Assembly: GCA_004431415.1 (NCBI GenBank)
Contig: QPMI01000411.1
Span: 292,772 to 356,771 of the forward strand
Direction of reading: 5' to 3'
Length of the DNA: 64,000 bases
Source: Cyanophora paradoxa CCMP329
Lineage: Eukaryota > Plantae > Glaucophyta
Program-made: the position numbers and the translations under genes
Notes under the pieces: generated by a model
The model's input: only the letters and a program-made list of their open reading frames with translations
What the model was told of the DNA's origin: nothing
Databases searched by the model: none
In this document: piece by piece, positions 42,963-60,037 of the stretch
Layout: each line of letters opens with the position of its first letter
How positions within the stretch are numbered: position 1 is the stretch's first letter

Positions 42963-44950
42963 CTAGGGCCTAGGCGTCCGGGGCGGCCTCCCAGGGGGCG
43001 GCGCAGGAGGCCTCCGTCTCGGCCACCGCCTCCTCGAGCTCCTCGTCCCCCGCCTGCCGCCCCGCCCCGCCTCAGACGCCTCCCCGCGCCTCCACCCCCG
43101 GCCCCGGCGCCCCCGGCCTCCCCACCGCAACGGTGAGCCGGGGCCGGCGGGCGGGCGCACCAGGCCGAGCTGCACGACGGCGGCCGCCTCCTCGCACGGC
43201 AGCTCCGCCCCCTCCGCCCCCTCCCCCAGCGCCGCCCCCTCCGCCTCCGCCGCCTCCGCTTCCGCCGCCTCCGCCGTCTCCGCCCCCGCCCCCGCCACGG
43301 CCTCCTCCTCCTCCTCGTACCCCTCCTCGACCGCCACCACGAGCGTCCCGTCGTCCAGCTCTGCCCCGCGTCTCAGGTGAGGGGGGCGGGTGGGGGGGAA
43401 AGGAAAGGGGGTACCCTTGAGGCCCAGGAACTTGAGCATCTTTCCGAAGAAGCCTGCGCCCAAGGCGTCGACGGGGATAGAGGGCAGAGGGGCAAATTAG
43501 CAAACAAGCGCACCGGTCTTCTTGTCCTGCGTGGCCTTCATGCCGGCCTTGGCCTGCGGCGCGTCGTACCCCACCAGGCAGGCGGGTACGGCCTTCTGCG
43601 CGGCGCAGCTGCGGAGCGCGCGCGCGTCGGGCGGCGCGGCACTCGGCCGGCGCGGCGCGGCGGGGCACTGACGCCTTGATGCAGTCCTTCATCGAGAGCT
43701 GCGGCGGGGCGCGGGCGGTCGGGCCAGGGGAAGGGCCGGCTGCTGGGGGGGGGGGGGGGGGCACCTTCGCGTGCTCCGAGACCTCATCGCCCATGCGCAG
43801 AACAGGCTGTGGGGGCGTCAGGGGTCCGCCAGTGGGGCCCGCGGCGCTCGCTCCCCCCGCCGCCGGGGGGTACGCGCCTTCCCCTTCCACTTCTTGCTGT
43901 CGGGCTTGTCGGGGTCTTCGTAGGGCCTGAAACCCGAGCCGCCGGTGAGCCGCCCGAGCCGCAAGCGCGAGGCGGAGCAGCGCGGCTTGGCGCGGCGCAC
44001 CGGTGCCAGAAAGCTGGGCGGGGCGATCGTGGAGCGCCGCAGGGGCGATCAGGGGAGAAGGGGGGAGGGGGGGGGGGGGGAGTGGATAAAGAGGAGAGGA
44101 GCCGGCGGCGCACCGTCCACGAGCTGGTGCTGCGGGCCACACGCCGTGAAGGGGTAAGCGGCAGGGGCGGCGTGGGGCACGGGGCGCCAGGCGATCGCAC
44201 GGGGTTGTAAGTGTAGTGCTTTGTGTAGGGGATGATGCCGCCCCAGTGATCCTGCGCATCGCAGGAGCGCGGGGCGCGTTTGGCGGACGGACGGCCCCAC
44301 GCCGACAGCCGGCCGCCCGGGCCCGGGGACGCTGGGACTCCCGCGGACTCGCACCTTGTGAGTGTAGACCGTAAAGTCATCCTCCGTGAACCAGTTGTCG
44401 TTGAATCTGTTGAAACGGCGCGTGAAGCCGGGGCTGCGGTTAGGGGCGCGAGCGTCCAAGCTGACCGGAAGTCAGAGGCCGGCTGCCAGTGCTTCTTTTC
44501 GATCTGCAGCACCTGCGACCGAAGAAAGTTAGCATTGTGGCTGCCATCCAAGGCCTTAATGCAAATCTATCGAAGCGGCGGAGCCAGCTGCAGCATGGAG
44601 CGCCACGCTGCGGCTGTCGAGGGGCTCGCTGGCTGCTGGGCGCCGTTCGACGCGCGCTGATTACGTCTCGACTCAGCCGGACGGATCACACTCCAGCAAT
44701 CGACGCCGGCTAACACCCGCGGCTCGCTATAACGCGGCCATGCCATTGCACCGCCGGCGCAGGACGGCATTGACTTCAGCGACGGAACAGGCAGGGATCG
44801 ACGCCCCGACGCCGACACTCGGAACGCCGCAGTTTTTGCCGCAAGCTCGCCGTTGAACCAAGGACCCCCCCACGGGTCGCACTGCACGGAACATACCTGA
44901 CGGCACTCGCACGGGCTGCACTCTTTCGCGTGCTTCGCGCCCATCACTGA
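42963..44950 (-). CDS. Hypothetical multi-exon protein with acidic C-terminus
   Basis: Coding-like exons (NRFNDNWFTEDDFTVYTHK|DHWGGIIPYTKHYTYNP, FRPYEDPDKPDSKKWKGK, LSMKDCIKA, GFFGKMLKFLGLK) with canonical introns. No family recognised; both ends uncertain. Confidence 0.45.
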
Positions 44951-49878: not shown

Positions 49879-52357
49879 GGAGGCCGCCTTGGCCGCCTGC
49901 TGCTGCGCCTCCGTCATGATCTGCGCCCCGCTTGAGCGCGAGCGAGCGGCGGGGGCGGGCCGCCCAAGCAAGGGAACGCGGAGCGCGGAGCTCGCCTGCT
50001 GGACGAGGGGGTGGACCTGGATGGGGCACTCCTCCTCCACGGGCGGCGGGGGCGGCGGCGCGACGACGACGGGCGCCTCCCGCACGACCGTCTCCACCGT
50101 CGTCGTCGTCTGGCCCCGCACCAGCGTCTGGCGCCCCGCTTAGCAGGAGCGGCGGCGGCGCGGGGCGGAGAGGGGAGGGGAGGGGGCGGACGCGGAGGTC
50201 GACGAGGAGGGAGGAGAGCTCGGTCATGCGGGCCTCGAGGGCAGCGAGGCGCGACTCGTGCCCCGCGTCGGCGCAGCACGTCGCCTTGACGCCGGCCAGC
50301 GCCGACTCCACGTCCGCCACGTGCCGGTGCACCGACGCCAGCTCCTCCCCCGACGCCGAGACCGTCGCCGTGCTCGTGAACTGCCGCCGCCGCTCTACCC
50401 GCGCGCTCTCGGCCGGGGGAGGGGCGGAGGGCGCGCGGACCTGGCCGCGGAGTGCCGCGATGGACTCGTTCACCTCGGCGAGGCGAGCGTTCACCAGCTC
50501 GGTCACCTGCGCGCTCGCCCGTCACGAGGGCCGCCCGGCGGGCCGAGGGGGCCGCCCTCCCCGGCCGGCGCGCTCGCCTGGTCGGTGGTGAGGCCGCCGG
50601 CGCTGCCTGCCGCCGCCGCCGCCGCCGCCGAGGCCGAGACGGAGGTCAGCTGGTTCTTCACGTCGTTCACGGAGACCTCGAGCTGCGGCGGCGAGGGCGG
50701 CTCGGAGGGCCCCCGGGCTGAGCTCAGAGAGAAGAGAAAGGGCGCACGGAGCGGACGCGGGGGCCAAGGGCGTCGTCGCCCTCGCCGGGGGCGAGGCGGG
50801 CCTCGAGGCGGGCGGCGAGGTCCTCCAGGGCCGCCAGCCGCCCGTCCTGCTCCACGTCCCGCGCCTCCATCTGAGGCCGCTCGCGTCGGCGGGGGCGGCA
50901 GCGCGGGGCGGAGCTGCCTCTGCCTCGTTCGCGGGGCCGACCTGGGAGAAGCGGGGGTCGGTGGGCTTGGACTCGACGGCGCGGACGCGGCCCTCGAGAG
51001 TCGTCAGGTCCGTGCGCGCCGCCGAGAGGTCCGACTCGGCGGTCGCGAGGCGCGCGGCGAGCGCCGGGTCGACGGCCGCCCGCGGCGAGGCGGACTCGAG
51101 GGCGTCGAGGCGGCCCTCGGCGCCCGTGAGGGCCGCCTCGGCGGCGGCGAGGCGGGCGGCGAGCGGGGCGTAGTCGGTGGCGGGGGCGGCGGGGCGGGCC
51201 TCGAGGCTGGCGAGGCGGCCGTCGAGGCCCGAGAGGCGGGACTCGTGGACGCCGGCGAGCGACTCGGCGGCGGAGAGGCGGCCCTCGATGCGCGCGAGCT
51301 CCGCCACGTCCACGCCGCCGTCGGAGGAGGAGGAGAGGCCGGCGACCGAGGCCTCGAGGCCGGCGGCGCGGCCGGAGAGGCCCGAGACGTCGGCCTGGGC
51401 GCGGGCGACGGCGGCCTGGAGCTCGTTGTAGCGCGCGTCGTGCGCCCCGAGCGAGGCGCGCAGGCCGTCCACCGCCGCCCGCAGCGACGGCACCTCCGAG
51501 CTGCAGCAGTCCGGCGCCGAGACGACCACCGGCTGCGGCGGGGCGATCGGGATGTCCGTCGCGATGATGGGGGCGTCCAGCGGGAGCGCCGCCACGACCG
51601 GCTTGTCCAGCAGGATCGTGCCCGGGCTGTACGTCGTGTACGCCGTCGCGCTCCCGCTCCCGCCGAAGCTCTCCGAGCCGCCGCCGCTGCTCGCCGGGCC
51701 CGATGAGGCGCTGTACTCGGAGACGGAGACGCTGCGCGAGCCGCTGTCGCCCGAGGAGGAGGAGGAGGAGAAGGTCGTGGTCACGCTCGAGGCGCCGCCC
51801 CCGCTCGTGTACATCGCCGCGCTCGCGTAGTACTGCGCGCCGCGGGCCCGCACGGTCGGCCGGGCGATAAGGCGAGGGCCCCGCGGAGGAGGGGCGCGCG
51901 CACGGGCAGGCGCAGGTACTCCTCGTAGTCCAGGTCGTTGGAGCGGTTCACGTCGGCTTGTGTGAAGGCAGAATCGCGCTGCTGCACCGGCACCGTCTCG
52001 TTCTGCGCGGTTGGTTGGCCATTAGGTGAAGCTATCAACCGAAGCCCCGGCGCGGCGGCCGGGAGGCCCGACGGCGCTCTCTAACGACGGAACTGGATAA
52101 AGCTCTAGGCCGCGATTCGCGATCCAGACGCCGCCGCGGACCGGCGGTCCGGGTCGCCCTTGATAACGGCCGCGCACGACGGCGAGGGCTGACGAACCGT
52201 GGCGTAGTAGTATTCACCGCGGTCGATAGACTTACTCCGGTTCGTGTCCACCACGCTAAACAATCCAGCCCGCACCTGCCCCGGCCCCGAACCCATACCC
52301 GCTGAACATTGGGCGCGAACATAGGGCTAGGGGGCGGACCTGCTGGGCGGCGTCCAT
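49527..52357 (-). CDS. EF-hand protein with long coiled coil and Thr/Val/Pro-rich tail
   Basis: Two EF-hand loops (DTNRSKSIDRGEY; DVNRSNDLDYEEY); heptad-like LAARLAAAEAALTGAEGRLDALE repeats; stop at 49527. Start tentative. Confidence 0.65.
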
Positions 52358-52746
52358 GGCTGCTTGCGAGGACTTGGAAGCGCCTCGAACCCGTCGCGAA
52401 CGCAGTGAAGACGCGAGCCGCGTCTGGAATCTGTACCCCCTAACCCCGGCCGGGGGGGGGGGGGGTCAAAGATCATCAAACCATTCTTCACTCGAGAGAG
52501 GGTGCGAGTCGATCCGCGTGAAGGTGAGAGGACGCTTCGTCTTGAACCGAAATTGATTCTTGAAGTCGCATAAGGAGCAGATCGATCCGCGCAGGGGCGC
52601 AGCGACGCGGGACTCGCGGCGGGAGCTTTCCCAGCCGTTTCATGATCAGCCGTGGCATCTGAGCCGAAATGCCGTAGCGAGTCGTCGAAGGAGCTCGGCA
52701 GGCAACGGCAGACGACGGGAGCCGATCGGCTGCACTGGAATCTCCC

Positions 52747-55700
52747 ATGCTCAATGCCGAGGGCGCATGCGAGGAGCTCGAGTCAGCTCGCAAGGTCCAG
52801 CAGCAGGCGCATCAGCACGGCGGGTTTGGACCGCGCATAATCCAATTGCTGTGGCTGATGTTCGTTCCTGCTCTCCCGGTGCGCCCGCGGCCGAGTGCTC
52901 ACCGTTGCGATTACGAGGTTGCGATTACGATTGGGGTACCGGTGCTAGCGGTCGATGTTGCGATTACGATGTTTGCGATTACGACCGGTGCTTGCGATTT
53001 CAAGTTTCAGCTACGATGTTTGCGATTACGATTTCAGCTACGATATCGACGTTCGACGGTTGCGATTACGAGGTTGCGATTACGATTGGGGTACCGGTGC
53101 TAGCGGTCGATGTTGCGATTACGATGTTTGCGATTACGACCGGTGCTTGCGATTTCAAGTTTCAGCTACGATGTTTGCGATTACGATTTCAGCTACGATA
53201 TCGACGTTCGACGGTTGCGATTACGAGGTTGCGATTACGATTGGGGTACCGGTGCTTGCGGTGGGGGATACGCTGCATCGCCAGTTTGCTGCTGTGCCGG
53301 CATCGTCCGCCGCATAGCCCGTACGCGTGTGCGCTGTCGTCCATCCCCCCCACACCCCGGGTATGCACGCTGCTGGTTGACGGCACGCGCAGCGCCCGGC
53401 CGGTCTGCCCGGTCTGTGATTCGGCGCGTTTCTGAGTCGACGCACCCAATGTCCCGGAACGACGAATCTCGGCCCGATTCGACGCCGATGTGCGCTTACT
53501 CGCCCCTGGTGGCCTCGTTCGCTGACCGCCGCCCCGCCCGCCCCCGCGTTCGCAGCCGCCCGGACTGCCCAGCGGTCCTAAAGGACGTCCAGATCGTGTG
53601 GCAAGGTTGCGAAACACCGGAGGCCACGTACCCCCTCTCCGACTCCGCGACCCCCTCCTCCCCTCCCCAAAGCCTTACCCTGTACCCCCTCCTTCGCCCA
53701 GTTGAAGAGGAGGCGAGGGCGGAGGCTGCGCGGCGCGCGGAGGAGCGGGAGGAGGAGCGGAGGGCGGCGGAGGCCGCGGGCGTGTCGAAGGCGGAGCTGA
53801 AGAGGCGGGAGGCGGCGAGAGCAAAGGCCGAGGCGGCCGAGGCGGCGAAGCCGCGCCTGGCGACGCTCGTGTACGTCCTCCGGCGCTGCTGCCTCGAGGG
53901 CGAGACGAGGGACCGGGTCTGGCGGGAGATCGTGGCGGCCGCCATCGTCTACAACGCCTGCATCGGCCTCATCAAGCTCCACCGCTGGGTGCGTGCCGGC
54001 CTCTGCCCGCTCAGGCGCGTTGCTGACGCCCGGCGCGCGCGCGCTTCGCCTCCCCTGGCCCCCAGATCGTCGACGACCTGAGCCAGAATGCAGCGCGCAA
54101 CCTGCTGCATCGTGCCTTCGCCAACGTGCACGTCTACACCGGCGACCGCGCGGCTCCTCGGCGCGCTGCCTCGGAGGGGGCGTCCGAGGCGTGGGGGGGG
54201 CTGGCCGAGGAGGTGACGGAGGAGGGCCACTACGACCTCGTCATCGCGGGGCGGGGGGCGATGCTCGCCGAGCTGGGCCCCGAGGAGAGGCGCTGCTTCA
54301 ACGGGGCGCTCGGCCACACGCGGGAGGCGGCGGCGGACGACGCGCTGCGGGCGGCGAGGGACCAGATCGCGCGGGGCAAGCCGCTCAAGAAACTCAAGTG
54401 CGTGTCGTTGGAGGGGTGGGGGTGGGTGGGGGGGGTGGGGGGGGGGGGGGGGGGGGGGGGGCCTCCTCGCTCGCCCCGAAAACCGATCCCGCCTTCCCCC
54501 CTCGTGCAGGGATCGCAGCCTGCGGCGGCGGCAGTGCTCGGCCGTCGTCAAGTCGGGCGACTACAACAAGGGTCTCGGGGCCCACTGGGGCTTCCTCAAG
54601 ATGCTCCCCACGCACGACGGGCCCCTCCCGTCCGCGATCGAGCACGACGCGCGGCTCGTCCTGAAGCCCAGCGGGAGCGTGTGGTGCGTGTCAACTTCCC
54701 TCTCCTTCCCAACCCCTCCTTTCGCTTCGCTCTCGTTGAGCGTGGGGTGCGTCGCAGGTTCTGCATCCCCGTCGAAATGGAGAAGGCGCGCGCGGCCCGC
54801 ACGACGAGGGTCATGGCGCGGACCTTGCCGGCGGAGGGCGACTGCGAGGCGAAGACGACGGAGGCCCGCACCGTGCCGGCGACCTCTCGCCGGCGGAGCC
54901 CCAGGGACCCGGCGGGCGACGGGGGCGACCGCGAGTCCGAGCTGGCCCGCGAGGCCTGGCTGGAGCTCCGCGGCAAGTCCCTCGTCGCCGTCGACCCGGG
55001 CTCCCGCAAGCTCATCTCCTGCTTCTGCCCGGACGGGCGGGCCTTCGAGGTGCGGTGGTCTCGCCTTCTCCCCCTTTGTCGTCCATCCGACGACGCCCCT
55101 CCCCCGCGCAGTTCGGTGCTGGTCTGTCTCACGCACGGGAGCCCGCACTGAGGCGGGCGGCGGCGCTCATGGCCAAGTCGGAGCTGAAGCCGGGCCCCGC
55201 TGCGTGCGCCCCCCCTCCCTCCTTCCTCCCTCCCTCCCTCCCTCCCTCTCTCTCCCTCAGTCGGTTTGCCAGGGGCGGGTCAGCCCCGCTCAGCGCTCGC
55301 ACGCGCCGCCGGCTGCGGAAGAAGGTGCTCCGGATGATCGAGCACGAGCGCAACGTGGGGCTGGACGCCCTGCGCGTCATCGCGCGGTGCGCCCCCCTGA
55401 GTGCTGCAGCCTCTTCGTGGCCTCTGCGGTTGACACCCCCCTCAGGTTCCTCGTGGAGAACTTCGACTACATCATCATCCCGGAGTTCCGCACGAGCGAG
55501 ATGGTGCGCTAGCGTGATTCGACGTCGTCCGCTCTTCCTCTGTACGAACCCCCGGGGGCAGGTCCGGCGCAAGGGGCGGATTCTCGGGCCCGCCGCTGCG
55601 CGCCAGCTGCTCTACTGCCGCCACTATGAGTGAGGGCGGGCTGATTCTGGTTCTGGTTCCGGGGTGGGGCTCACTGCTCGCCCGTCGCCCCTCCCCCCGC

Positions 55701-58700
55701 CCGCAGGTTCCGCTGCATCCTGCAGCAGGCCGCCCTGCACCGCCCGGAGTGCACGGTGCTCCTCGTCTCCGAGCACTACACCTCCAAGACCTGCGGGGCG
55801 TGCGGGTGTCTCCACACGGAGCTCGGCGCGGACGAGACGTTCCGCTGCCCGAGCTGCCCGGCGGAGATGGACCGGGACCTCCAGGCCGCCCGGTGAGTGA
55901 ATTGACTAGTCGTAGTCAATTCACCTCTATATCGTAATCGCAACCTCCGCTATAGCTGAACCAGTAGAATCGTAATCGCAACCTCCGCTCCTTAAATCGT
56001 AATCGCAACCTCCTTAAATCGCGATCGTAATCGCAACCTCCGCTAGAATCGTAATCGCAACCTCCGCTAGAATCGTAATCGCAACCTCCGCTAGAATCGT
56101 AATCGCAGCCTCCGCTATAGCTGAACCAGTAGAATCGTAATCGCTACCTCCGCTCCTTAAATCGTAATCGCAACCTCCTTAAATCGCGATCGTAATCGCA
56201 ACCTCCGCTAGAATCGTAATCGCAACCTCCGCTAGAATCGTAATCGCAGCCTCCGCTAGAATCGTAATCGCAGCCTCCGCTATAGCTGAACCAGTAGAAT
56301 CGTAATCGCAACCTCCGCTCCTTAAATCGTATACGTCATCGCAACCCTCCGCTATAGCTGAACTAGTATATCTAGAATCGTAATCGCAACCCTCCGCTCG
56401 AGGTCACCCCAGTAAACATTAAGTTTATATCCTAATCTTAACCCATTGAAATCTAATCGCGATCGATGTCTCGTAATCGCAACCTGACCTTACAAATGAA
56501 TTCGCACACACCGATCGAGAGACAAATGGCTAGGGATATGACTGCAGTGTCCATCTGTGTCAAGTCGAGAGATGAGCCTACGGGAACAAGTCGCAACCTG
56601 ACCGTCTGTAATCGCAGGAACATCCTCCTGCGGTTCCTCTCGGGCGTGGACGCGGGGCTCCGCCTCAAGCCCCTTCTGCTGGCCGGCTCCGGCCCGCTGC
56701 GGGCCGCCCCCGGGGCGGCCCCGGCCCCCCAAGCTGCGGCGCAGGCCGCGTCGAGCGCTGCTCGTGGGCAGCTCGCTACGCCGGCCTCGTCGTCGTAGTT
56801 TAGGCAGGATAGGGGGACCGCGTACCCCCCTTCAGCGGGCCCTGCCTGCGTTGCCCGCAGGCTTGTCGCCCCCGTAGGTGGCACGGACGCAGCTAAGCTC
56901 CTGCGTAGTCCGCAGCTAGCGTGCCCGTGTTATCAATGCGCTCACCGTTGCCCATCATCTACCCTCAGGCCGTATGGCTGAGCTGTTATCCGGGCGCGCT
57001 GGAAACGCCTCAAGACCGCCGTAACCTTTTCATGTATTCGGGGACTCTTACAGGTTAGCCGGCCAACCGGGCCCCACCGATCCCCGCCCGCCGACCCTCC
57101 CGATCGGCCCCCCCGCAGGCCTACAGGTCTCGTTCTCGCTTGTTTGCTGGGGCAGCCTCGTCTACGGCTGGGACATGTCGTGCAGGTGCTTTGCAGTTCA
57201 TGTTTCTCGCCTCGAGGGCGCATAGATCGGGAGCGCCCGCGGCGCTCACCGGTGCCGGGGGCGCCGCGCAGGCCGCGGAGCGTGGCGGTGACGGTGGGCG
57301 TGCCGCTGCTGGTCTACTGCGGCTGGTACGGGGCCGGCTGCTGCCTCATGGCCTACGCCCTCCCCCTTCGGTTCCTGGAGCTGCCGTTTGTCCTGCCCGC
57401 CATCGGTGAGAGAGCCTCCTCCTGATCTCTAGATCTGGCCCTCCACCGGGTGCGCCCCGGCCCGCTGAGCTCTGGCCCTTGGCGCGTGCGCGCGCGCGCA
57501 GTGGCCGCCCTCTACGTCCCCTCCTGCGCCTCCTCCGTCCTCGTATGGAACCGCCTCCTGCGGCGGCGCCTGCACCCGCGCCCCGCCCTCGACTTCGAGC
57601 CCGTCGAGCTCGAGCTCGAGCCCGCCATGGCCAGCGGCGCCGGCGGCACGCTTGTCTCGGACCTCGACTCGCCCCGCCCCGCCCAGCCCTGCCTCAACGC
57701 CAAGACGGCGGCCCGCGACGCGCCGGCCAACGCCCAGCCCGGCGCCCCGCTGCTGGCCGGCGCCGTCGACTTCTGGCGGGCGCACTACAGCCAGCGCCCG
57801 CCGGCGCGCCCCTCGGCGGAGCTGCTGCTGCTGCGCGACGGCGAGGGGAGCCCGGGGGGCGGGGCGGGCCCGGGCCGCGGCGGGCGAGCGATCTGAGCGT
57901 GGCGGGCAGCGACGAGCGGGAGCGGCCGGCGCCGAGGAGGAAGCACCTGGCGCTGGCGTGGGGCGCGGGGGCGGAGAGGGATGCGCTGGGCCCGGCCTCG
58001 GACGACACTCTGGACGGGAGCCTCGCCCCGCCCCCCTCGGAGGAGGAGGCGGGTCCCGGGAAGGAGGAGGACGGGCCGCGCGCGCAGGCGGCGCAGGCGG
58101 GGGCCGAGGCGGGGCCCCTGACGGCGACCTCGCCCTCCTCGCGCATGGCGATCTCCCTCGCGCTCTCGGCGTCGGAGGCGGGCACGCCCCGGGCGCGCCT
58201 GCTGCGGGGCCAGGCGCTGCGCGCGGGGCGCCGCCGCTTCCTCGACGACGCCCCCGAGATGGCCTGGCGCCTTCTCAAGTTCATGGGCGGCCTCACCGTA
58301 CAGATCTACCCGGTAGCCCCTCCCTGCCCCCCCCACCCCCCAACAGGAGCCTTCTCCTTACGTCTCGCTTCGCAGATGTGGGGCTACGTCTTCCTCTTCT
58401 CGCTCTTCGAGGACAGCGGCTCCGCACAGGTGCCCCGCATTCTTCCGCCTACCCCCCCCTCCTCCCCCCCCCTCCGTGCGCCCCGTGAGACCGCACCTGT
58501 ACCCACCCGTCCGGCAGGTCCTCATCAGCCTCGCCTTCTCCGTCCTCTCATTCGCCACCTGCTTCGCCATCCTCCGCGTGCGCCGTACCCCCCTCCTCTT
58601 TCCTTCCCTGTACTGTGCTCATCTCCCTACCCCCCGCAGGCCTACAGGGGCTTCCTGGGGGACCTCCTCCCGGACTACGGTGGCCCCGTGCGCCCCGCGC

Positions 58701-60037
58701 CGCCCTCGACCCGCGTACCCCCCTGACGCCGCATACCCCCCGCGCGCGCAGGCCATGGCCCTCCTCTGGCTCCTCGTGCGCGTGTACCCCCTCCCCCGCC
58801 GCCGCGCCGCCGCTCACGAGAGGCCCTCTTCCAGCACCTCCTCCGCAGCTTCCGCCTGTGCGCCGGCCGGCCCGCCGTGCCTACAGCGCCAGCGCCGCGC
58901 CTTGATGCGCTGAGGCTGGCTGGGCGCGGGGCAGGCTGGTGAGCTTCCGGGCCTCGTCGGACCTCGTCCTCGCCTTCGGCGTCTTCAGGCCCGCCCCGCG
59001 CCCCCCCCGCGCCCCCGCGCCCCCCTCCGCATCCGCCGCCCCCGCCCTGACGCCCCGTGGCGCAGCGACTGCGTCGTCTGCTTCGCCCCGCTCCTCACGA
59101 CACGCGTCTCCGACGACGTCGGCCGCCGCCTCTACACCGTCGGCCCCCGCACCCCGCCCCGCCCCGCCCGGCCCCGCCCCGCCCCGCCCCGCGCGACGCG
59201 GGGGCAGGTGCCGGCGTCGGTGCTGGTGCTGACGAGGCCGATGAGGCGCCTCTCGAGCGCGCTCGCCTCGACGGCCTCCCTCCTCCGCTGGCGCCGCCGC
59301 CCCCGCTCCGTCGCCGACTCCCACCCGCACCTCCCGTGAGACCCCGCCCCCCCGCGTCTCTCAGGATCGGTCCCCGCGTGCCGCACGGCTCACGTGCACC
59401 GCGCTGGCTCGCAGGGCGCTGGCGGGGCCGCCGCTGGCGGCGATCACTCGGGAGCACGGGGGGGTGGAGCTGGTGCGGGAGTCGGGGCGGGCGCTCTTTT
59501 TCCTCCAGGCCCTCTCCTCCATCAGCGCCTCGGTCCAGTTCGTCGTCATCCTCACCGTCTTCCGCTTCGGGCCCGCCCGCGCCCTCTTCCCCTACCACGA
59601 GGCCGTCCTCCCCGCGCGGGGCTACGCCGCCTGCCTCCTCGCCGCCGCGGCCTCCGTCGCCATCATGGCCGCATGCCTAGGCGCAGTCTGGCTCCTCTCC
59701 GCCCGCGGCCCCGCCGGCCCCGGCCCCGGCGGGGCGGCCGCGGGGCCGGGGGCGGGGGCGGCGAGCGCGCGGCTGTGCTCGGCGGCGGTGCGGGACGGGT
59801 TCGAGATCGGGTGGACGATGGTGGACGTCTTCGGCAAGCGCATCGCTGGCATGTGCGCGAGCGCGCCGACCCCGCCAACTCGCACGGCTCCCTCATTTGA
59901 TCTCCGACGCGGCGCGCCGGGTCGCGCGCGGGCGCAGGTGGATGACGTCGGTGCTGATCACGACGGCGGCCGTCTGCCGCCACTACGGCGTCTTCTCCGT
60001 CGTCTTCCCCGCCGCCTTCGTCCCCTCCGCCCTCTAG
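52747..60037 (+). CDS. Multipass membrane protein (host gene) with the Fanzor element in one intron
   Basis: Exon 52747-52878 (...IIQLLWLMFVPALP) splices in phase 0 (GT 52879, AG 56968) to AVWLSCYPG...LFMYSGTLT|GLQVSFSLVCWGSLV...; many hydrophobic exons follow to TAG at 60035-60037. Further upstream exons are possible. Confidence 0.7.
52904..53258 (+). repeat. Left-end tandem array of TTGCGATTACGA, 155-bp higher-order unit (~2.3 copies)
   Basis: Higher-order units start at 52904, 53059 and 53214, each with several TTGCGATTACGA cores. Confidence 0.92.
53449..56798 (+). CDS. Fanzor (tnpB-like): Fanzor2 / IS607-TnpB-like RNA-guided RuvC endonuclease, ~628 aa, ~12 exons
   Basis: Exons 53449-53489 and 53556-53605 (both tentative), 53702-53988, 54066-54397, 54510-54683, 54758-55049, 55112-55203, 55261-55386, 55446-55503, 55562-55629, 55707-55892, 56618-56798 join in frame (1887 nt). 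Motifs: IVYNACI, EHDARLVL...WFCIP, RuvC-I VAVDPGSRK, DYIIIPEFRTSEM, VSEHYTSKTCGAC...FRCPSC zinc finger, RuvC-III DRDLQAARNILLRF. Confidence 0.9.
55931..56400 (-). repeat. Intronic tandem array of ATCGTAATCGCAACCTCC (reverse complement of left array core), 165-bp higher-order unit
   Basis: About 16 units; higher-order units start at 55931, 56096 and 56261; further partial copies at ~56471 and ~56607. Lies within the 725-nt last Fanzor intron (55893-56617). Confidence 0.92.
56799..56960 (+). ncRNA. Candidate Fanzor omegaRNA (scaffold + flank-derived guide)
   Basis: Lies between the Fanzor stop and the right junction, with dense potential stems: AGGCAGG/CCTGCCT, AGGGGG/CCCCCT, GCCTGCG/CGCAGGC, TGTCGCC/GGTGGCA, GCACGG/CCGTGT, CTGCG/CGCAG. 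Position matches known TnpB/Fanzor omegaRNA loci; the 5' end may overlap the last exon. Confidence 0.55.

Follow-up and report, generated by a model that had tools for sequence, protein, structure and literature searches.

A Fanzor element flanked by a 12-bp duplication in intron 1 of a Cyanophora paradoxa membrane-protein gene

The insertion signatures of several Fanzor elements and of a Replitron have been described. The Fanzor1-carrying Helitron2 elements CRe-1, CRe-2 and CRe-3 of Chlamydomonas reinhardtii have intact 3' ends, truncated 5' ends and duplications that vary from 7 to 19 bp, a pattern termed "one-ended transposition" (Bao and Jurka, 2013, PMC3627910). The MCi-2 Fanzor elements of Mucor circinelloides have 11-12-bp duplications, no terminal inverted repeats (TIRs) and a mechanism that was left unclassified (PMC3627910). 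Also in Chlamydomonas, Replitron-1/N1 combines variable-length duplications with a few extra nucleotides past a "fuzzy" right end, and Fanzor cleavage was speculated to contribute to the variable duplications of Replitron-1 (Craig, 2023, PMC10288648). Finally, the IS607-type Fanzor2 elements known from giant viruses and amoebae encode a serine recombinase, terminate in defined inverted ends and produce no duplication (PMC3627910, PMC10530073). Here we describe a Fanzor element that lies within the first intron of the gene tig00020556_g11065 (g11065) of the glaucophyte Cyanophora paradoxa CCMP329, in a 64,000-nt stretch of contig QPMI01000411.1 (assembly GCA_004431415.1, positions 292,772 to 356,771 of the forward strand) that is called the window below and is numbered from its first letter. 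A literature search found no publication on Fanzor in glaucophytes.

The borders of the element and of the host intron that surrounds it are as follows.

52747-52878, plus strand: coding exon 1 of host gene tig00020556_g11065, aligning to residues 5-40 of paralog P0003, with a GT following at 52879
52879-56968, plus strand: host intron 1, 4,090 nt now and 47 nt before the insertion, GT..AG, joining the exons in frame
52897-52908, plus strand: left copy of the 12-bp duplication, whose last 5 nt could equally be array sequence of the element
52909-56939, plus strand: inserted non-autonomous Fanzor element, 4,031 nt, with a DNA depth 2-7 fold above the single-copy flank
56940-56951, plus strand: right copy of the 12-bp duplication, containing the CTCAC on which the 3' splice site now relies
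56969-57053, plus strand: host coding exon 2, 76% identical to P0003 residues 41-69

The element was inserted with a real duplication at 52897-56951. Specifically, a repeat search of the window located the exact 12-mer GCTCACCGTTGC on the plus strand at both element borders, as the first-pass annotation of this DNA had reported. The probability that two 12-mers drawn at random from this GC-rich window are the same is ~1.5e-5 and, given ~400 placements near the two element edges, only ~0.006 such pairs are expected there by chance. Both junctions are bridged, with no differences, by DNA contigs from independent 2012 and 2024 runs (52452/52484-52933 at the left junction; 56900-58100 and 56855-57682 at the right junction), indicating that the insertion structure is not an assembly artefact. 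Contig joints from DNA and RNA runs further show that, in three other members of the family, the sequence flanking the element on the right is unrelated to GCTCACCGTTGC. This indicates that GCTCACCGTTGC is target sequence and not an element repeat or a recombination core. The sequence that precedes the left copy, ...GGCCGAGT, contains no T-rich tetranucleotide or TTTT target. A third exact copy of GCTCACCGTTGC is present at 43127-43138 on the minus strand, 25 nt inside another apparent intron that also begins with GTGCGCCCGC. We considered whether this copy marks a preferred target or an introner motif, and it is largely explained by the common intron motifs GTGCGCCCGC and GCTCACCG, which occur 7 and 11 times in the window, respectively. 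A recent insertion is plausible given the perfect duplication, the intact gene and array units that are 98-99% identical.

The placement of the element within a host intron was borne out by comparison with a paralog of the host gene. A search with the host open reading frame (ORF) at 57410-58723 returned two proteins, namely P0002, which is the 675-aa public model of g11065 starting at the ATG at 57032, and P0003, a 711-aa Cyanophora paralog (tig00020830_g14443) on another contig that is 53% identical and has ~61 extra N-terminal residues. Exon 52747-52878 aligns to P0003 residues 5-40 (E 2e-5) and 56969-57055 aligns to residues 41-69 (76% identity, E 5e-13), with the two alignments abutting exactly at residues 40|41. 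Thus, exon 1 belongs to g11065 and 52879-56968 has to be removed from the mRNA, which supports its assignment as intron 1 of this gene. When 52909-56951 is deleted, a 47-nt GT..AG intron (30 + 17 nt) is rebuilt in frame, in agreement with what had been noted earlier, with CTCAC located 24 nt upstream of the 3' splice site. This pre-insertion intron is shorter than the other introns mapped in the area (58-112 nt), and a CTSAS motif occurs at a comparable distance from the 3' splice site in about half of the local introns. Because the duplication leaves a CTCAC at each end, neither the 5' splice site nor any part of the 3' signal has been lost, and the element may be removed together with the host intron given that both splice sites and one branch-like CTCAC survive.

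Two low-depth contigs from RNA runs are unspliced across the 5' splice site (52491-52933, depth 3.4; 52607-52885, depth 4.6) and could represent pre-mRNA, intron retention or DNA carry-over. The host is a membrane-protein gene with no Pfam family on its exons or on P0003, and the element lies in the same orientation, an arrangement in which the element's 3' end and ten introns might disturb transcripts of the host gene. Exon 1 and the initial 21 codons of exon 2 are absent from the public model of g11065, the likely cause being that the Fanzor gene nested between them broke up the prediction. Upstream of the host gene, a divergent minus-strand gene (52273-52338, about 52359) starts ~390 nt from host exon 1 and has a 64-nt intron confirmed by RNA; this gene and g11065 appear to share a bidirectional promoter region.

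The two ends of the element differ in character, and the following two features are relevant to them.

52904-53262, plus strand: left tandem array, 155-nt unit x 2.3, core TTGCGATTACGA
56799-56939, plus strand: 3' tail past the stop codon, the high-copy right end and a candidate guide-RNA scaffold, with a depth ~24 times single copy

Relative to the single-copy flank, depth in the DNA runs is ~2-5 times for the element body, ~7-18 times for the arrays and ~24-26 times for the last 200 nt. A tail depth this far above the body depth indicates that there are many 5'-truncated copies. The right end is shared by the family, as contigs of other copies stop matching at 56934, 56935 and 56937, and an RNA contig runs through the right end of another copy. 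The element itself ends with ...GTGTTATCAATGC at 56939 and carries neither a poly(A) nor a simple-repeat tail there. Regarding the left end, ACGGTTGC precedes GATTACGA in the other array units and the junction reads ACCGTTGC, such that the last 5 nt of the left 12-mer (GTTGC) match the array, with 7 of 8 positions in common with ACGGTTGC. A 5-nt match at a junction arises by chance about once in 1,000. Since GTTGC can also be assigned to the element array, the true duplication is 7-12 bp, and the earlier suggestion that the repeat is partly microhomology holds. We read the left junction as a probable microhomology-mediated join inside the array and not as a defined terminus.

Searches of the element for mobility functions agree with the initial observation that TIRs and a transposase are missing. 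There is no inverted match of at least 8 nt between 52897-53060 and 56760-56951, where the left end may be truncated, and on either strand of the element there is no Pfam family besides the TnpB zinc-ribbon and no second gene, transposase or recombinase. The stretch 56780-56960 is predicted to fold no more stably than shuffled sequences do (z -0.39), and neither Rfam nor ARAGORN returned a match on the element. Comparing the element by BLAST with the remainder of the window gave low-complexity matches only and no further copy, and a protein search for other copies with the tail ORF at 56466-56795 gave no match.

The gene carried by the element is composed of the following parts.

53449-56798, plus strand: Fanzor/TnpB gene with 11 coding exons, of which exons 1-10 reproduce P0001
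53449-53489, 53556-53988, 54066-54397 and 54510-54683, plus strand: Fanzor exons 1-4, from the P0001 mapping
54758-55049, 55112-55203, 55273-55386 and 55446-55503, plus strand: Fanzor exons 5-8, from the P0001 mapping
55562-55629 and 55707-55892, plus strand: Fanzor exons 9-10, from the P0001 mapping, with exon 10 carrying PF07282
56618-56798, plus strand: Fanzor exon 11, matching residues 1799-1814 of paralog P0005

A 341-aa ORF at 54126-55148 retrieved a single protein, P0001 (EukProt tig00020556_g11064.t1), which maps exactly onto ten exons from 53449 to 55892 and is therefore the public model of the present locus. Exons were searched one by one, P0001 being the only spliced protein used, and the last exon was searched separately. 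P0001 ends at DRDLQAAR, and the conserved continuation NILLR..SGVD is found in exon 11, past a 725-nt intron; the public g11064 model thus omits the last exon at 56618-56798. Identification as a Fanzor gene is upheld by the match of exon 55707-55892 to the Cas12f1-like/TnpB zinc-ribbon (TNB) domain PF07282 (E 9.9e-14), a family that the P0001 protein also matches (E 3.5e-13). In an alignment with ten homologues the DPG aspartate is nearly invariant, the glutamate of SEHYTSKTCG and the RD of DRD do not vary at all, and all of these residues are present in P0001. They are the conserved RuvC residues of the motif of Bao and Jurka (D ... E before [TS][TS]xxC4 ... RD). As judged from these residues, the nuclease gene is apparently intact and active. 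A library-wide HMMER search returned 4,030 relatives, and the best solved relative of the protein is the mimivirus L79 Fanzor2 (PDB 9b0l, E 2.6e-8).

Five introns of the Fanzor family are confirmed by spliced RNA-run contigs of close paralogs. Over the Fanzor exons at 53700-55600 the RNA-run contigs have 2-8 substitutions per exon and a 9-nt insertion, GGCCGAGGC, after 53825. These differences indicate that the clearly expressed copy is a paralog and not demonstrably the present one. Intron 3 contains a run of ~49 G at 54413-54461 where short-read contigs break. The paralog P0005 (tig00021617_g22932.t1) is a 1,839-aa public model on another contig in which a Fanzor C-terminal lobe, with 47% identity to the present one, is fused to a zf-CW domain and one half of a UCH deubiquitinase domain. 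It represents either another Fanzor copy lying in sense within or beside a host gene, or one beside a Helitron with a deubiquitinase domain; a cluster look-up with the P0005 N-terminus gave UCH clusters only and no Helitron link.

A second insertion is nested within the last intron of the Fanzor gene.

55893-56617, plus strand: Fanzor last intron, 725 nt, with a hairpin followed by an inverted array
56490-56590, no strand assigned: nested 101-nt insertion within the 13-bp duplication TCGCAACCTGACC (56477-56489 and 56591-56603)

The hairpin has a perfect 12-bp stem (GTGAATTGACTA / TAGTCAATTCAC, 4-nt loop) at 55897-55924, begins 4 nt into the intron and directly precedes the array at 55931-56485, which is inverted relative to the left array. 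An empty form of the 101-nt site is present in another copy of the family, where a DNA contig of run X8 continues from 56489 with GTCTGTAATCGCA. Approximately 90 nt of the nested piece (~56497-56588) match a very abundant sequence with a DNA depth of ~8,800 versus 115 for single copy, and this sequence is also very deep in the RNA runs (~5,000). Rfam gave no significant match on the nested piece, the sole match being the C/D snoRNA Afu_513 with E = 6, and the piece does not resemble a tRNA either. The 12-bp and 13-bp duplications of these two independent insertions at one locus suggest a single break-making activity.

Comparison with the systems described above shows that the first-pass annotation, which spoke of an unidentified mechanism, overstated the novelty of this insertion, as the same signature is documented for CRe-1/2/3 (7-19 bp) and MCi-2 (11-12 bp) (PMC3627910). 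The present element resembles CRe-1/2/3 in that an intron-rich Fanzor gene is its sole gene, it has no transposase of its own, and the family has over-abundant 3' ends and ragged 5' ends. The one-ended signature of CRe-1/2/3 is likewise seen here as a 12-bp duplication, an over-abundant tail and a junction inside an array. In contrast to CRe-1/2/3, no Helitron2 hairpin or asymmetric terminal inverted repeat ends and no TTTT target were detected, the protein is nearer to Fanzor2/TnpB, the host is a glaucophyte, and the left end has an array of a 14-nt motif that recurs in inverted form within the last intron. The absence of TIRs, a similar duplication length, variable or fuzzy 5' regions and a constant 3' region encoding Fanzor are shared with MCi-2. 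However, MCi-2 duplications follow ATAATTNNNN(N) while the present one is GC-rich and begins with GC, and MCi-2A contains a partial Crypton gene (PMC3627910). With Replitron-1/N1 the element shares a copy-and-paste insertion signature, variable duplications and extra nucleotides at the right end, whereas Replitrons are bounded by short direct terminal repeats, insert at an RG target and carry a Rep gene themselves. The closest protein kinship is with the IS607-type Fanzor2 elements (the 9b0l match noted above), and, as in these, a guide-RNA region would be expected at the 3' end. Yet the present element lacks TnpA and terminal inverted repeats and has a 12-bp duplication, so the poor fit to IS607 integration pointed out at the outset stands.

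The data show that a full-length, apparently intact but non-autonomous Fanzor element was inserted in sense orientation into intron 1 of g11065. As to how it arrived there, the explanation that we favor, and regard as reasonably probable, is a one-ended copying process that was anchored at the right end, started from a staggered break and was mobilised in trans. In such a process a staggered break would occur in the 47-nt first intron and the fixed right end of the element would be joined first. Copying would then run leftward through the Fanzor gene into the left tandem array and would close at a 5-nt match between array and target (GTTGC), with fill-in of the stagger giving a duplication of 7-12 bp. 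The mobilising enzyme would act in trans and, by analogy with the Fanzor-carrying Helitron2 of Chlamydomonas, would most likely be a rolling-circle (HUH/RepHel) transposase.

Several observations weigh against this explanation. The Helitron2 hallmarks that were tested, asymmetric terminal inverted repeats and a T-rich target, are absent, and the element is thus CRe-like in behaviour but not fileable as a Helitron2. Glaucophytes yielded no Rep proteins of the Replitron type (PMC10288648). Between the shared right end and the right 12-mer there are 2-5 nt (AATGC or GC) that neither the element nor the duplication explains. No left end of other copies was recovered, and the reading of a ragged left end is therefore based on the junction microhomology and the depth profile. 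Finally, neither an empty allele nor an orthologous empty site is present among the contig joints listed (17 weaker joints lie outside that list), and a spliced joint from 52878 to 56969 is likewise not among the listed joints of the RNA-run contigs, which thus lend no support to the first-pass proposal that the host could still splice out the insert.

Other routes into the intron account for part of these data. Retroposition in trans, in which the reverse transcriptase of a long interspersed element (LINE) used target-primed synthesis to copy the element's unspliced transcript, beginning at the fixed 3' end, would produce the fixed right end, the over-abundant tail, the 12-bp duplication and the 5-nt junction microhomology, all of which are classic for this process, and the nested insertion, 101 nt of a very abundant RNA within a 13-bp duplication, also speaks for it. 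However, the hallmarks of a LINE-type retrocopy are missing, as there is no poly(A) or LINE-type tail at the right end and all 10 introns were kept even though five introns of the family are spliced in RNA contigs. The copy also takes in ~540 nt of array and upstream sequence before the annotated start, and we consider retroposition unlikely. A break inflicted by the element itself would involve a staggered cut of ~12-13 nt by a Fanzor ribonucleoprotein (RNP), its own or that of a paralog, followed by capture of the element through fill-in and end-joining or through synthesis-dependent repair. The apparently active nuclease encoded by the element, the near-equal duplications (12 and 13 bp) of two unrelated nested insertions and the filler-like nucleotides at the right junctions are congruent with this idea, which was raised for Chlamydomonas by Craig (2023, PMC10288648). 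Nevertheless, a variable stagger of any origin would explain varying duplication lengths, and we assign such a self-inflicted break a rather low probability. The narrower proposal that the 12-bp and 13-bp duplications are both filled-in overhangs of staggered Fanzor RNP cuts is, in our estimation, improbable.

The duplication itself also bears on the remaining alternatives. If the 12-mer were a core common to a circular intermediate and the target, as in Crypton-like or IS607-like site-specific recombination, the resemblance of part of it to the array unit (7 of 8) and the third exact copy in another intron would fit. On the other hand, the right flanks of the three other copies do not contain the 12-mer, no recombinase is encoded, and GCTCACCG is common enough in local introns that the third 12-mer is only mildly unexpected, making site-specific recombination very improbable. 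That there was no insertion, and that the 12-mer pair is a coincidence in a long first intron that always held an old resident Fanzor gene, would agree with the failure to observe an empty site. Against this, the pair sits exactly at the borders of repeated sequence where almost none is expected by chance, and the other mapped introns are far shorter except for the 725-nt last intron of the Fanzor gene; we give this reading next to no credence. A cut-and-paste DDE transposon was rejected for lack of TIRs. To our knowledge, there is no DDE superfamily with a typical 12-bp duplication.

The insertion signature at this locus is already known from Fanzor elements of other organisms (Chlamydomonas and Mucor) and, as a single insertion, the locus is otherwise ordinary. 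Its analysis corrects two public gene models, g11064 by a last exon and g11065 by a first exon. For the question of how Fanzor elements that lack a transposase move, the present locus provides a clean, full-length and apparently intact example. Its value lies in two junctions that are verified in independent DNA runs, in an exon join that is set by a paralog and in microhomology that falls within the element's own array. If Fanzor RNP cuts did produce the duplications, then transposase-less Fanzor elements would rely on their own RNA-guided nuclease and on host repair both to spread and to take up other DNA or cDNA, which would explain the one-ended, variable-duplication signature published in 2013. 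Finally, the locus bears on whether a host gene tolerates a sense-oriented Fanzor element that resides in one of its introns.

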